Assembly: GCF_001194135.2 (NCBI RefSeq) | Contig: NC_069007.1 | Coordinates: 73,160 to 111,351, forward strand | Direction of reading: 5' to 3' | Length of the DNA stretch: 38,192 nt | From: Octopus bimaculoides | Taxonomy: Eukaryota | Shown: piece after piece, positions 16,002 through 28,188 of the stretch | Layout of the letters: every line of letters starts with the position of its first letter | Position numbering within the stretch: the stretch's first letter is position 1 | The notes under the pieces: model-generated | Told to the model about the DNA's origin: nothing | The model's database searches: none | What the model saw: only the letters and a program-made list of their open reading frames with translations | Position numbers and translations under genes: made by a program

Positions 16002-16212
16002 CTAATTGGTGCCGCTATGTCAGACATGTTTCTATAGAATTTCGATGGAACCATCCAGTTGAATATCAAATTCCAGTCAAAACGGCCTATTTGTATGGCA
16101 CTTCCTACTGAAGTGACAAAGTGTAGTGTACTGTCATCGATCTGGTCAATCACTGGAGTCACAACATAGCGCTTGTCAGTAGCGATTCGATCAAGAATAG
16201 GCTCCAGCCAGC
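16002..16212 (-). CDS. GALNT: GALNT variable exon copy C: G|WLEPILDRIATDKRYVVTPVIDQIDDSTLHFVTSVGSAIQIGRFDWNLIFNWMVPSKFYRNMSDIAAPI|R
   Basis: Acceptor ttttatatccAG, donor AG|GTTGGT; 211 nt (2+69x3+2), phase 1/2; no stop; joins the exon at 6131-6248 in frame (AG|A = Arg). Confidence 0.88.
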
Positions 16213-17224
16213 CTGGATATAAAATTAGACAATTATTTTAACTGGTTAAATGTCTACATCTTTGTAAATTAGTTTGTTTATCATTAATAAGAGTATAATT
16301 TTTGCCAATTAACCTGATTATCTTAAGAGATGGTATTTAGTTACAAAATTTCATCTTCTAGGTACTCAAGTCAAAATTTGCCTTTGATTGTAGCAGTTGA
16401 TAGAATAAAGTTGATTTAGTTAATTAAGCTCTTCTTCAAATATACGGTTTCATCAGACATCAATATTTTCATTTACAATAAATTTTCAAACAGCTTCGAT
16501 TTCTGATCATCACCATTCTTGGATGAGTACAAAGTACAAGACTGAACTTTCAATCATTTTCTGATTTCTCATCTGACATTTCTCAGAGTGGATCCTATGA
16601 ATAAATTCTAGTTAGTATACCATGAAATAAGATGTCCCCGATTAATAATTTATTTTATCATTTTCAAAATAATAAGTTATCATATATTATATATTATTTA
16701 AATAAATGCTCTCAAACAATTTTCATTTACTATAAAATGGCAGAGTTGTCTGTTTTGCATTCCACGATTTTTGACAAAATCATATAACAGATTCTGTAAG
16801 AAAATAAGTTTGGGAATGTATTTCATCACAACACCATTGACACAGGAATTTGAAGTGAAATTCCCTTTAGTTTAGAAATAAAGGTTTCCTAGATCTAATT
16901 CAGTCTGATACAATGTAGTTTGAACATTTCTAGGAATAAGACAATGACTAGAGATGAAACTGATTGATACATATGTAAATCCTGAAATACTGTTTTATGT
17001 CCATCTCTAAGAGTGAATGAGGTGAATGGTTTGGAAAATTATAATCTTATTTTAAACAATTCAATTATGCATCCAGTTTAATTGTTATTTGCTTGGTATA
17101 AATAAAAAAAATGTTTTTAACAATAACATAAAGAAAGAATGTAATAATAGCTAAACAAAAATAATAAAGAATTGAATAATAATAATAATAATAATAATAA
17201 CAACAACAACAACAACAGCGATTT

Positions 17225-17686
17225 TGTTTGTCTCTGCTACAGGTTACTAAATGCGGCCTTCAGTGCACTAACACCTCCTTGTCTGTCCGGAAGTCAAAGC
17301 CCCAGAGGATCTTTGCCCTCTTGCTTTCGTCCATTACCTTTTCCAGTGTACATTGGTACCAAGCACCCATTACCTCATATCCATACTTCCAGTACAGTAG
17401 TTTTGGACTATCTTGTCGTTTCTGTGCTTCAACGCTTTCTGCACAAGACTTTCACAAGCACTAACAATGCTCCTACCCACACATGTGGCCACGGTTCATT
17501 GTACTTCTGTTTATCCGTTTTCACTGAGCTTGGGTATTCAATGCCAGGCCCTGGGCCATGATGATTAGGTTTTCAGTCTTCTTTTCAAGGTTACCCATGC
17601 TGAGCCACCTCCATGATGCTCCCCCACGGTACACACAATATCTTCAATCTACAACATCACAATATTGGATACTGTGCAACGCTTTC
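17225..17686 (-). mobile_element. R4/Dong-like (RLE-type) non-LTR retrotransposon fragment
   Basis: SWRWLSMGNLEKKTENLIIMAQGLAL...KHRNDKIVQKLLYWK...KILWGFDFRTD...RPH; stops and frameshifts; flanked on both sides by (AAT)n/(AAC)n. Confidence 0.75.
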
Positions 17687-17730
<44 letters not shown>

Positions 17731-17754
17731 TAATAATAATAATAATGATGATGA

Positions 17755-18960
17755 TGTTTTCTACTATAGGCACAAGGCCTAAAATTTTTAGGGAAAGAGT
17801 TAGTTAATTACATCAATCCCAATATTTGATTAGTACTAATTTTATCAATTTCCTGAAATATTTCAGAAGAGGGCAAGTCAATTACAACAACCCCAGAGTT
17901 CAACTGGTACTTAATTTATCGACTCTGAAAGGATGAAAGGCAAAGTTGAAAAGAAGTAGGATTTTATGCAGAATCAACTTACAACAGATGCTTTTATAGA
18001 ATCAAATGCTTGATAAAGCAACTTATCCAAAAATAAGCTGACATCACCAACCCAATGCATGCAATATATTCTCTCTACAATCATCGCTCAATTCTATAAC
18101 AGAACTGTGAGCTCTGTCATCAAATACTACATTACAGATTCGATATCAAATAGCCATCCCACGCTCAACATTTGACATTATAAAACATTGCTCAATCCAT
18201 ACAACTCACTCCCTGCACATTCACAATAACACACGCGAAGCCAGCCAACAAAATGTGACATGTGGCTCATAATCTCCACAGAAAATAGAAAGAACATTAA
18301 AATAAGATGAGAAATAACAAATGTCACAAACAAAAGTAGAACATTATCGACAGCTGTGAATTTCCATAAAAAAAAAAAGACTGTCAAGACACAGCTCAGG
18401 AAATCAGAGGAGCACTGGATGGTGGTACTGTAGACACATGGAGGAAATTGTTGAAATAATAACAATAATAATGGTTTCAAATTTTGACACAGGGGCAGCA
18501 GTTTTGCGATGAGTTGATTACATCAACCCCAGTGTTCAACTGGTACTTATTTTATCTTTTCTACTCTAAGCACAAGGCCCAAAATTTTGGGGGAGGGAGC
18601 CAGTCAATTAGATCGACCCCAGTATGCAACTGGTACTTATTTTATCAATTTCTAAAGGATGATGGGGACAAGTTGACCAGATAAAAATTTGGAAGACCAC
18701 TAAACATTTTGGCCAGTGTCCTAATGATGGCAGCTCATTGTCTTTGAAATAATAATTCTTTCTACTATAGGCAAAAGGCCTGAAAAGGGGAGGCGAGGGG
18801 CCTAGTCGATTACATTGAGCCCAGTGCATAACTGGTACTTAATTTATCGACTCCAAAAGGATGAAAAGCAAAGTCGGCCTTGGTGGAGTTTGAACTCAGA
18901 ACATAATGAAGAGAAAATATTTTACCCAGCATGCTAACGACTCAGCCAGCTCACTGCCCA
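17755..18960 (-). mobile_element. Cluster of 4-5 partial or full SINE copies (same family as 6941-7134)
   Basis: Repeated CTACTATAGGCACAAGGCCT..., CCCCAGT...CAACTGGTACTT...AAGGATGAAAGGCAAAG; head GCCAGCTCACTGCC at ~18945-18958. Confidence 0.8.
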
Positions 18961-19441
18961 ATTGATGCTGACAATAGGATGCACCATTCAAAGGCAAATG
19001 TTAGTGGAACTTAGGCATCAAAAGTGGAGGAAGGTAGATATATCTCAAACTAACGTACCAAACCACCACTAGGGGTCTACACATCTTTCTCTCAATATCA
19101 GGAGTTTAGCCGTCTAGAAATTATGAAACGTTAGGAAAACAGGAAGAAACTCGATTGAACAATAAAACACTTGAGAACATTTTCTCAAGACCTTTTTTTA
19201 ATACAAAAAGACAAAGCAACACAACCGTTTGCCAGAAGATTAAAGCAAAAGGCAAAACATGGCCACCGACCAAAGTAGAAAAACTGGAAAGAAAAAGTTA
19301 TGTACGGTAAATATCTAGCTCAACAACGGATAAATCAATGGCTCAAAGGTATTGGGGACACACTTACACACAACCCTTCCACCCAACGAATTAATTTTAT
19401 GCATACATCAAGAAAACGGGGGGAAAAACGGGTTTAATTAT

Positions 19442-19533
19442 GAATAGCCTCCCATTTTTCCAATGAGAATAGCCTCCCTTTTTCCAATGAGAGTAGTCTC
19501 CCCCTTTTTTTTTTCAATGAGAGTAACCTCCCT
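19442..19533. repeat. ~25-bp minisatellite, ~4 units (GAATAGCCTCCC(T)nCCAATGA)
   Basis: Directly visible tandem units with a variable T run. Confidence 0.85.
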
Positions 19534-19904
19534 TGTTTGCTAAGGGAAGTTACTCTTGAATTACTCTCGAAAACAGAATTTACAGATTTTTGCAATAAAT
19601 GAATAATAATTAAACCAATTACAACAACAACTCTCCGAGGCAGTTTGATCGGCTAGAAACTACAGCCAAATCCCCTGAACAACACACATGTAATGAAGGA
19701 AGAACACGATAGACAGTTGTCTCGTCGTCGCAGGAACAGAGCTGACTTAAACAACAACAAGAACTACACAATCCGTTAGAAATCGATGGAATCTAAATAT
19801 AAAAGGGTTCACTGTGTATCTGTATGTGTGTGTATGTATATGTGTGTGGGTGTGTGCTAGTAAAAATAGGTGTAAAAGTATTTGTGTACATATGTATGTT
19901 CTGT

Positions 19905-19935
<31 letters not shown>

Positions 19936-26393: not shown

Positions 26394-27336
26394 CACACAC
26401 ACACACACACACATTTACAAATCAGTCACAGAAACACTATGCAATAACATGGAAAAAGTACTTTACTACTTATTGTACAATCGACAATAGCAACAAAAGA
26501 GCGAATGATAACAGTTTTCATGAGTAGAGCAGACGTACTAATAACAACATATTTGAATAAAGGGAAATATTTCTACAAACTTTTATCTGAATCTTAATTC
26601 TTCCTATTTAGTCTTGATTCCCTGAAATATATCCTTGCATCATAATTATAAACCACAGAGATATCTTAATGTGTTCTCAGGTCTTTGGATGAAATTTGGG
26701 ATAGCTCATATAAAACAAAGCAACAACAACAACATCAACAATCATAATAATAGCAATAATTACTTCTTATAAAGGGTAAAATGTCTGAAATTTAACGATA
26801 CAATCGTTACTTGATTGATATTGTATTTTATCCACTCTGGAGAAACAAAAGACAAGCTCAAGCTTGGAGGGATGTCAACTCAGAATGTAAGAAGTGGAAC
26901 AAATACCACAAGGCATTTCTCTCAACATTAACATTTCTGCTGACCACCACCATTAATAATTGTTTCTAAGACAAGCACGACTGAAATTATTTATGGGTGG
27001 GGTAGGGTATTGTTAGTTGATTACATCAACTCCAGGACACACAGACACACACAATTACCTATATATATATATATGTACATATGCATGTGTGTATGTATAG
27101 ATATATATAAATGCATGTATGTTTGTATAGCTGAATAGACTAGGTAATTGTAGTAACCGACAATAAGAGAAACAGAATGAGCGTAAGGACGCTTAGCATT
27201 TATTGGTGCCTTACAACATGGCCAGGGGACTTCTGTCTTTGGGAAGAGTCATAATATTTGGCCATTTTATAAGATCTCAATAAACACCAAGTTTGTGTGT
27301 GTGTGTGTCCCCAAACACAGATATAAATATGTATGC

Positions 27337-27370
<34 letters not shown>

Positions 27371-27499
27371 GTTTAAATATGTACATGTACAAGGTTTTGA
27401 TATTTAAAATAACAGCAGAGAATATGTAAATAATTATAATCTGAATATGGAATGCCTCTTTCCTTTTTTATTTTATATTTATTTAGTAAAGCTCTACTT

Positions 27500-27532
27500 G
27501 CTGCTGTCTTCTTTTTTTTTTGTATTTATGCA

Positions 27533-27626
<94 letters not shown>

Positions 27627-27744
27627 CGCACACACATTTGTGTATGTGTGTTGTCTTTAACACTTTAAAAAAAGAAGACAGGTGTTTGTGTGTGTACGTG
27701 CATGCATGGTGTACATGTGTACACATATGATGTACGTATGTGTA

Positions 27745-27779
<35 letters not shown>

Positions 27780-27950
27780 GCATATATTTATATATACACA
27801 CACACACACACACATATTTATACATACACACACACACATATTTATACATACACACTCTAACACACATTATAGACATATAATGTGAGGTACTATATATATA
27901 TTAGTGTGTGTATATAGACACAAATACGCGTACATATATACACATACAGG
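27500..27950. repeat. (TA)n/(TG)n/(CA)n microsatellite block
   Basis: Directly visible. Confidence 0.95.
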
Positions 27951-28011
27951 GAAAGAATCGTCTTTTTTTCTTTCTCTCTACATATTGTCTTCTACTGGTT
28001 CCAAAATATAC

Positions 28012-28188
28012 CTGATTGGTGCGACATCACTGTTCCGTCTCTGTCGTTCCACATCTGGTATTCCATGCCATGTGAATTGTAAACTCCAATCAAATCCTCC
28101 TATACTTGTGCTCTTAGCACTACCGTATTGGTAGCGGAATGACTCATCCTCGACCACATCTATCACAGGAGTCACAACATTTGACTTG
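28012..28188 (-). CDS. GALNT: GALNT variable exon copy A (canonical type; 5' end lost in gap): ...KSNVVTPVIDVVEDESFRYQYGSAKSTSIGGFDWSLQFTWHGIPDVERQRRNSDVAPI|R
   Basis: Donor AG|GTATAT, phase 2; family-consensus GGFDWxLQFxWH; the sequence runs into the N gap at 28189, so the acceptor is not visible. Confidence 0.9.

Follow-up and report, generated by a model that had tools for sequence, protein, structure and literature searches.

Three diverged copies of one catalytic exon lie in tandem in a polypeptide GalNAc-transferase gene of Octopus bimaculoides. They were found on the minus strand of contig NC_069007.1 (assembly GCF_001194135.2), positions 73,160 to 111,351. This stretch of 38,192 nucleotides is called the window here, and positions are counted from its first letter. 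Going by the sequence, the copies, named A, B and C in the order in which the gene is read, quite likely form a functional cluster of mutually exclusive exons in which B, C or both are used. If so, several enzymes, each with its own targets, would probably come from a single gene.

It is the GalNAc-transferases that determine at which serines and threonines mucin-type O-glycans are attached. How acceptor specificity is encoded in these enzymes is an open problem, and it is usually studied through paralogues that differ everywhere.

The window carries the 3' two-thirds of the gene, which is of the PGANT9/gly-5 type. Its exons were mapped by reading all six frames, by tblastn with relatives and by inspection of splice sites. 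Exon A (28012-28188) is of the canonical type and encodes KSNVVTPVIDVVEDESFRYQYGSAKSTSIGGFDWSLQFTWHGIPDVERQRRNSDVAPI(R), where a bracketed residue is one completed across a splice junction. It ends in ACCAATCAG, followed by gtatat, which makes the donor CAG/gtatat, in the same phase (2) as the donors of B and C. Only the 3' 177 nucleotides of A are visible. Since an assembly gap (28189-28980) covers its first 37 or so nucleotides and its acceptor, this is not its true length. Alignment with orthologous A-type exons gives an expected full length of about 214 nucleotides, or 3n+1, and it is from these orthologues that we infer the 5' boundary.

Exon B (21677-21884) measures 208 nucleotides (3n+1) and encodes (G)WLEPLLSRIQTNHTHVVTPMIGIINDDDFHFMRASKSVSIGHFDWSLIFRWKQSTSFYKNLSDICAPV(K). 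Its acceptor, ending in caactacag, has a strong polypyrimidine tract, and its donor is CAA/gttagt. Exon C (16002-16212) measures 211 nucleotides, also 3n+1, and encodes (G)WLEPILDRIATDKRYVVTPVIDQIDDSTLHFVTSVGSAIQIGRFDWNLIFNWMVPSKFYRNMSDIAAPI(R), with a modest tract before an acceptor that ends in atatccag and with the donor TAG/gttggt. Both open with GCTGGCTGGA in phase 1, finishing a glycine codon before WLEP. Both leave in phase 2 after AP(V/I), so that their last two bases and the first base of the next exon, D, spell K or R.

All three copies are free of stops in the homologous frame, and all retain VVTP.I, IG.FDW.L.F.W and AP. The open frame alone is weak evidence for B and C, as about 4.6% of the non-exonic 69-codon windows in this DNA are stop-free too. 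Homology together with splice sites at homologous positions indicates that the resemblance is not chance. When each copy was searched against the window by tblastn, it matched the other two (E from 1e-9 to 1e-23) and nothing else. A search with nine bivalve versions, at E values up to 50, similarly turned up no copies in the window beyond A, B and C. At the protein level B and C are 51% identical, while B and A are about 50% identical over 40 residues. The introns around the variable exons are 5.5 to 9.8 kb long, and all sites are GT-AG.

What sets the cluster apart is its arithmetic. Because the versions share their phases and are all 3n+1 long, inclusion of two of them, or of none, shifts the frame of the mRNA, which soon meets a stop. 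This can be followed by virtual splicing of the window exons. Joining A or B to C reads LAGAYS and then a stop, and joining A to B leads to TGA TGA after 26 codons; a two-copy mRNA thus stops within 7 to 27 codons. Omitting all three puts exon D out of frame. The rule is that every two-, three- or zero-copy mRNA carries an early stop. The initial annotation of this DNA had proposed three homologous minus-strand segments with shared phases, lengths of 208 and 211 nucleotides, open frames and conserved motifs, of which exactly one gives an in-frame message. The mutual tblastn matches bear out the segments, and the other features, including the one-copy rule, were all reproduced.

A mechanism can be sketched from this. 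The spliceosome would select a single version out of A, B and C, joining it on one side to the upstream constant exon (encoding DSHCE to G, and lying beyond the window) and on the other to exon D. Messages with two versions or none would be removed by nonsense-mediated decay, a process that has been described for frame-dependent clusters of C. elegans (PMC4165533). The donors of the variable exons (GTATAT, GTTAGT, GTTGGT) depart from consensus, as do those of the pearl oyster Pinctada, while constant exons have GTAAGT or GTGAGT. This fits a regulated choice.

Two other ways of keeping exons apart were rejected. Steric exclusion does not work over introns of this size, which are far too long for it, and U12-type incompatibility is not compatible with sites that are all GT-AG and show no U12 consensus. 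A limited search for docking/selector RNA pairing, in the introns from A downstream, found that only the complementarity of TG/CA and TA microsatellites exceeded shuffled controls. Long microsatellites of these kinds adjoin D, C and A (at 6249-7647, 15402-16001 and 27412-28011 respectively), and give strong but non-specific complementarity between introns.

The variable exon aligns roughly with residues 232-303 of GalNAc-T2. The peptide groove of that enzyme is lined by V255, L270, F280, W282, Y284, F361, H365 and F377 (PMC4432651), and five of these eight lie within the exon. F280, W282 and F361 together make up the +1 pocket, with K281 as a gate (10.1101/2020.06.25.171371). Both F280 and W282, the pocket aromatics, are retained in A, B and C. 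At the position of V255, A has V, B has I and C has Q; the residue preceding F280 is G, H and R respectively, and the one after F.W is H, K and M. The loop that follows also differs. The three proteins would share the metal site, WGGEN, the flexible loop and the lectin domain, and they would differ in a segment of some 70 residues. Given the position of the exon in the groove and the altered residues there, the segment most likely changes the choice of acceptor peptides.

The copies are not equal. For nearly all of 120 scored relatives, A is by far the best match of the three, which makes A the canonical version. B and C have a basic residue in place of the second glycine of GGFDW (GHFDW in B, GRFDW in C). 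They have also replaced the histidine after F.W, and have lost the ER.RR loop signature. The non-canonical class as a whole can be recognised by G[K/R/H]F.W...WM. On these residues, B and C are taken to be members of an old divergent class that is also found in bivalves, and A to be the ancestral, general version.

Arrays in bivalves support the cluster. In Pinctada imbricata (locus L004, on a chromosome-scale record) the DSHCE exon is followed by six tandem copies, one canonical and five non-canonical, and then by exon D. All six have AG and GT sites, identical phases and lengths of 190-217 nucleotides, each 3n+1. A second bivalve contig, L005, repeats types 2 to 6 in unchanged order and continues with D and E. 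In a third, L006, the DSHCE exon precedes one A-type copy, after which come two non-canonical ones. The short contig L002 carries two versions 150 nucleotides apart. A comparison of L004 with L005 aligns the exons alone (66-78% nucleotide identity) and none of the introns, and no conserved intronic block was found between these two loci.

A profile of the non-canonical versions picks up dozens of single-exon frames on independent contigs, and these fall into the same sub-types. In a neighbour-joining tree, sub-types pair across species: Pinctada copy 6 pairs with the second version of L002 (bootstrap 92%), copy 2 with L003 (87%) and copy 4 with the protein P0001 (77%). Window A groups with Pinctada copy 1 and protein P0140 at 95%, and window B with window C at 58%. 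Exon C is 49-57% identical to the non-canonical exons of its bivalve orthologues.

P0001 deserves a closer description. It consists of 351 amino acids encoded on a contig of 1327 nucleotides, in which a non-canonical copy is joined to exons D through I. In Pinctada, the corresponding exons cover more than 5 kb, and the shortness of the contig implies that it derives from spliced RNA. Its constant part has about 98% identity to sequences of Crassostrea. A RefSeq model of Crassostrea gigas in the same 90% cluster, XP_019920088.1, similarly begins in the tail of a non-canonical exon joined to D. The initial annotation had placed a cassette of catalytic exons upstream of a single constant set, and P0001, together with bivalve arrays at the same intron positions, supports that arrangement. 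Also in this cluster is KAK3108596.1, an 880-residue Pinctada model (L004:2001-25462) which concatenates four of the six copies along with intron sequence. Going by its make-up, this model arose as an artefact of annotation. The same protein clusters contain many short 'GALNT5-like' oyster models, which have the look of fragments of such loci.

Some of the bivalve loci show oddities of their own. In L003, a contig from a hydrothermal-vent metagenome, the non-canonical exon at 849-1064 ends in CCAGTATG, followed by gttagt. In the window and in Pinctada, exon D starts with A; an exon D of this kind, spliced to the L003 copy, would complete a TGA. Either exon D would start differently in that species or the copy would be non-productive. 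An extra type-2-like copy in L005 (504-718) aligns by tblastn only in two parts, with a one-base overlap at 572; this suggests a frameshift, and the copy may be a decaying member of the array. At L004:7621-8195 the exon end encoding NQYASDMISLHRSLPDVRDEE is repeated in tandem as three partial copies, the second and third of them degenerate. L004:23276-23982 holds a tandem repeat of about 56 nucleotides, with about ten copies of the 3' end of the lectin-alpha exon (SGNYHKPVNMWPCHNQGGNQVTIINQ...), directly downstream of that exon.

Not everything favours a working cluster in the octopus. The acceptor of A is unseen. Bootstrap support for placing B and C with the non-canonical class of bivalves is below 50%, and the placement rests on signature residues. 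B is the most divergent copy, with the longest branch, and in it the ID of VVxPxID has become IG; exon B could be decaying. The protein collections contain many invertebrate fragments but no close relative from a cephalopod, and this goes for the constant exons too, where the best identity is 91-92%, to oysters. This makes a protein search with B alone, which gave seven candidates and no close match, uninformative. The search of introns for regulatory RNA pairing, limited as it was, came back empty. That B and C are used in this species is something we infer.

These points feed the alternative that survives best, in which old tandem duplications of the exon left B, C or both behind as unused relics, and the octopus makes the A isoform only. 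The unusual substitutions of B (PMIGI, GHFDW, RWKQ) on its long branch would agree with this, as would the modest acceptor tract of C, the share of random windows here that are stop-free too, and the frameshift hint in L005, which suggests that copies may decay. Several features of B and C speak against this. The proportion of differing sites between them is 0.82 for synonymous sites, which is saturated, and 0.34 for non-synonymous ones; the dN/dS ratio cannot be interpreted because dS is saturated. The introns flanking B and C can no longer be aligned. Taken together, these figures and the introns speak for an old duplication with constrained coding sequence. Despite all this change, B and C keep open frames, AG and GT sites in the right phase, and every family-invariant residue, and bivalves have conserved the homologous class and express it. 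The relic explanation is therefore held to be improbable, though not negligible.

A second alternative blames the assembly: contigs of paralogous GalNAc-transferase genes, or contigs from elsewhere, could have been scaffolded together. No two of A, B, C and D share a contig; runs of 10 to 840 N separate them, so their order depends on scaffolding. Yet they are on one strand and follow the order of gap-free orthologous loci, which is canonical, non-canonical, D. Within the 38 kb there is no exon of a second GalNAc-transferase gene, and with B and C merely 51% identical, they are not collapsed or duplicated haplotypes. An artefact of this kind is very unlikely. That all copies are included at once, giving an extended protein in which the segment is repeated, might be suggested by the 880-residue Pinctada model, which strings four together. 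This is practically out of the question: in the window it is refuted by the frames, with two-copy messages stopping within those few codons, the Pinctada model stays in frame only through non-homologous boundaries, trimmed 5' ends of copies 2 and 3 and readthrough of introns, and a repeated core strand and groove segment would be incompatible with the GT-A fold.

A mutually exclusive cluster thus remains the preferred reading, and comparable arrays are not confined to molluscs. The exhaustive profile search was swamped by the constant region, one long row having set the length of the profile; its multi-stretch matches led to Diaphorina and Halocaridina. The shrimp Halocaridina rubra (L007:3274-20538; GCA_037179515.1, JAXCGZ010002431.1) has at least 13 tandem versions, the canonical one first. 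They have a shorter exon form, running from GWLEP to GGFDW.L plus one codon, with an AG acceptor, a GT donor and a length of 3n+2. The genome annotation divides this locus into two gene models, one of which concatenates four copies. Daphnia magna (L008, LRGB01002992.1) has two versions of the catalytic exon, at 7608-7754 and 9047-9196. In the same gene it has two versions of the lectin-alpha exon, at 10868-10978 and 11694-11774, from which it follows that catalytic and lectin clusters can coexist. A model of Diaphorina citri also has two versions of the exon, and another contig, L001, has a single canonical one.

The number of copies therefore ranges from 2 in Daphnia and 3 in the window to 6 in Pinctada and at least 13 in Halocaridina, and in every locus that takes in the start of the array, the canonical version is first. 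It is tempting, and perhaps a little short of an even bet, to see the exon from WLEP to the groove as a protostome-wide hot spot for mutually exclusive arrays, either old or repeatedly expanded. If this is true, one gene yields a panel of isoenzymes with differing peptide grooves, in parallel to the roughly 20 separate GALNT genes of vertebrates. It would also explain why such arrays were overlooked, as the fly and worm model genes diversify the lectin exon only.

Mutually exclusive exons are not new in this family. In C. elegans they are found in gly-5 (exons 9b, 9c and 9a) and gly-6 (exons 8a and 8b) (Kuroyanagi et al. 2014, PMC4165533). gly-5 belongs to the same GalNAc-transferase lineage as the window gene, and it also has a trio of homologous tandem exons, there experimentally mutually exclusive. 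The worm exons are different in that they measure 102-111 nucleotides, a multiple of three, and the frame does not enforce exclusivity. For 9b and 9c, exclusivity comes from an intron of 34 nucleotides that imposes a steric block (PMC4165533). Their size matches the lectin-alpha exon (105 nucleotides in the window, the same as gly-5 exon 9c), and not the catalytic exon of 208-217 nucleotides. By this measure, the duplicated exon of gly-5 probably corresponds to the lectin-alpha exon.

In Drosophila pgant9, exons 8A and 8B encode the lectin alpha subdomain (Ji et al. 2018, PMC6115407; structures 6E4Q and 6E4R). The choice between them is tissue-specific and switches the preference for charged substrates, and the cDNAs differ in exon 8 only (PMC6115407). 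The likeness is close, since PGANT9 is the nearest solved structure and a choice is made between homologous exons. In the fly, however, the exchanged part is a lectin alpha loop of about 30 residues, and in the window it is a catalytic groove segment of about 70.

Drosophila pgant5 is a further case. Its A and B forms have an alternative exon for the catalytic flexible loop, which shifts substrate preference (bioRxiv 2025, PMC12776162; UniProt Q6WV17-1, Q6WV17-2). This, too, is an alternative exon within the catalytic domain of a GalNAc-transferase. pgant5 is however a paralogue (the GalNAc-T1 orthologue) with two versions only, and its residues 398-457 comprise the flexible gating loop and a helix-turn-helix, which match the constant exon E of the window. 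The initial annotation had known of no cassette of catalytic-groove exons in this family; taken for the catalytic domain as a whole, that is outdated, given pgant5. It had also named alternative splicing in the lectin domain for both pgant9 and gly-5. This is right for pgant9; for gly-5 the splicing stands, with three mutually exclusive exons, and the lectin placement goes by size only.

GALNT13, Pgant5 and gly-5 have been grouped as a family prone to mutually exclusive exons (2022, PMC9741552), in a paper that does not mention a cluster of the WLEP-to-AP(I/V)R exon, molluscs or crustaceans. Outside the family, Dscam1 and exons 13A-D of mrp-1 likewise offer a choice of one among homologous exons arrayed in tandem. 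They differ from the present case, where a limited search detected no docking/selector pairing and where the frame (3n+1, or 3n+2 in the shrimp) filters out multiple inclusion. Compared with the known GalNAc-transferase cases, the window cluster concerns a different exon, that of the groove; it is enforced by the frame; and the homologous arrays are larger. No description of a WLEP-to-AP exon cluster was found in full-text literature, a scope that leaves out most subscription journals, and genome annotations may already list such isoforms.

Such clusters would be of use in the study of specificity. They offer a natural swap of a groove segment on an otherwise identical enzyme, made 3, 6 or 13 and more times depending on lineage. 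The versions make a ready panel for mapping determinants of specificity, among them the V255 position, the residue that precedes F280 and the loop that comes after W282. One orthologous gene also appears to have different exons diversified by phylum: lectin alpha in the fly, an exon of comparable size in the worm, the groove in molluscs, and both in Daphnia. On the practical side, the clusters flag faulty gene models which concatenate or drop copies, like the 880-residue Pinctada one and many of the short oyster ones.

The gene itself is assigned to the GT27 polypeptide GalNAc-transferases, in the PGANT9/gly-5 lineage, based on the best solved-structure match and on the names of its database matches. 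Drosophila PGANT9 scores 435 bits (6E4R) and 433 bits (6E4Q), against 314 for GalNAc-T1 and 260 for GalNAc-T2, and the database matches carry the names pgant9, gly-5 or GALNT5. In Pfam, each of the three isoform composites matches both Glyco_transf_7C and Ricin_B_lectin. PF02709 exceeds its cut-off whether the composite has A, B or C, and PF00652, at 97 bits against a cut-off of 29, indicates a C-terminal ricin-type beta-trefoil lectin domain.

The constant exons follow on the minus strand. Exon D (6131-6248, 118 nucleotides) finishes the R/K codon with its first base, begins SPTMAGG and holds WGGEN, the Gal/GalNAc-T motif. Exon E (5319-5504) starts with CSHVGHIFR and encodes the region of the catalytic flexible loop. 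Exon F (4303-4431) encodes the end of the catalytic domain and a linker. The lectin domain is made up of exon G (3184-3288), which encodes the alpha subdomain, exon H (2851-2979), and exon I (2144-2299), the last coding exon, which encodes lectin gamma and holds the stop codon. A duplicated lectin-alpha exon, as in pgant9, was sought, and only the single copy G was found within the gap-free stretch 1774-7647.

Upstream of the cluster, the gene is incomplete. The initial annotation had counted on an upstream exon encoding DSHCEC. Neither this exon nor the N-terminal ones were found in the window, using motif scans and tblastn with the N-termini of Mya, Pinctada and P0140. In orthologous loci the DSHCE exon sits just upstream of the array. 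The exons for the N-terminal half of the GT-A fold and for the DxH motif that binds Mn2+ must lie beyond 38192 or inside a gap.

The DNA of the window is AT-rich and laden with microsatellites, and it has seven N gaps. One gap (20437-21276) is within the B-C intron, 401 nucleotides from B, and could conceal another exon copy. A scaffold join of 10 N (24135-24144) is within the A-B intron; neither of these two touches an exon or a frame. A further gap (7648-8301) is within the C-D intron. There are also open frames in the introns. Pfam gave no match at E 0.01 for nine of them, which leaves a retroelement origin unconfirmed. By eye, those at 23901-24065 and 25070-25564 on the plus strand and at 12825-13508 on the minus strand look like decayed retroelement fragments, one of them with YADD.

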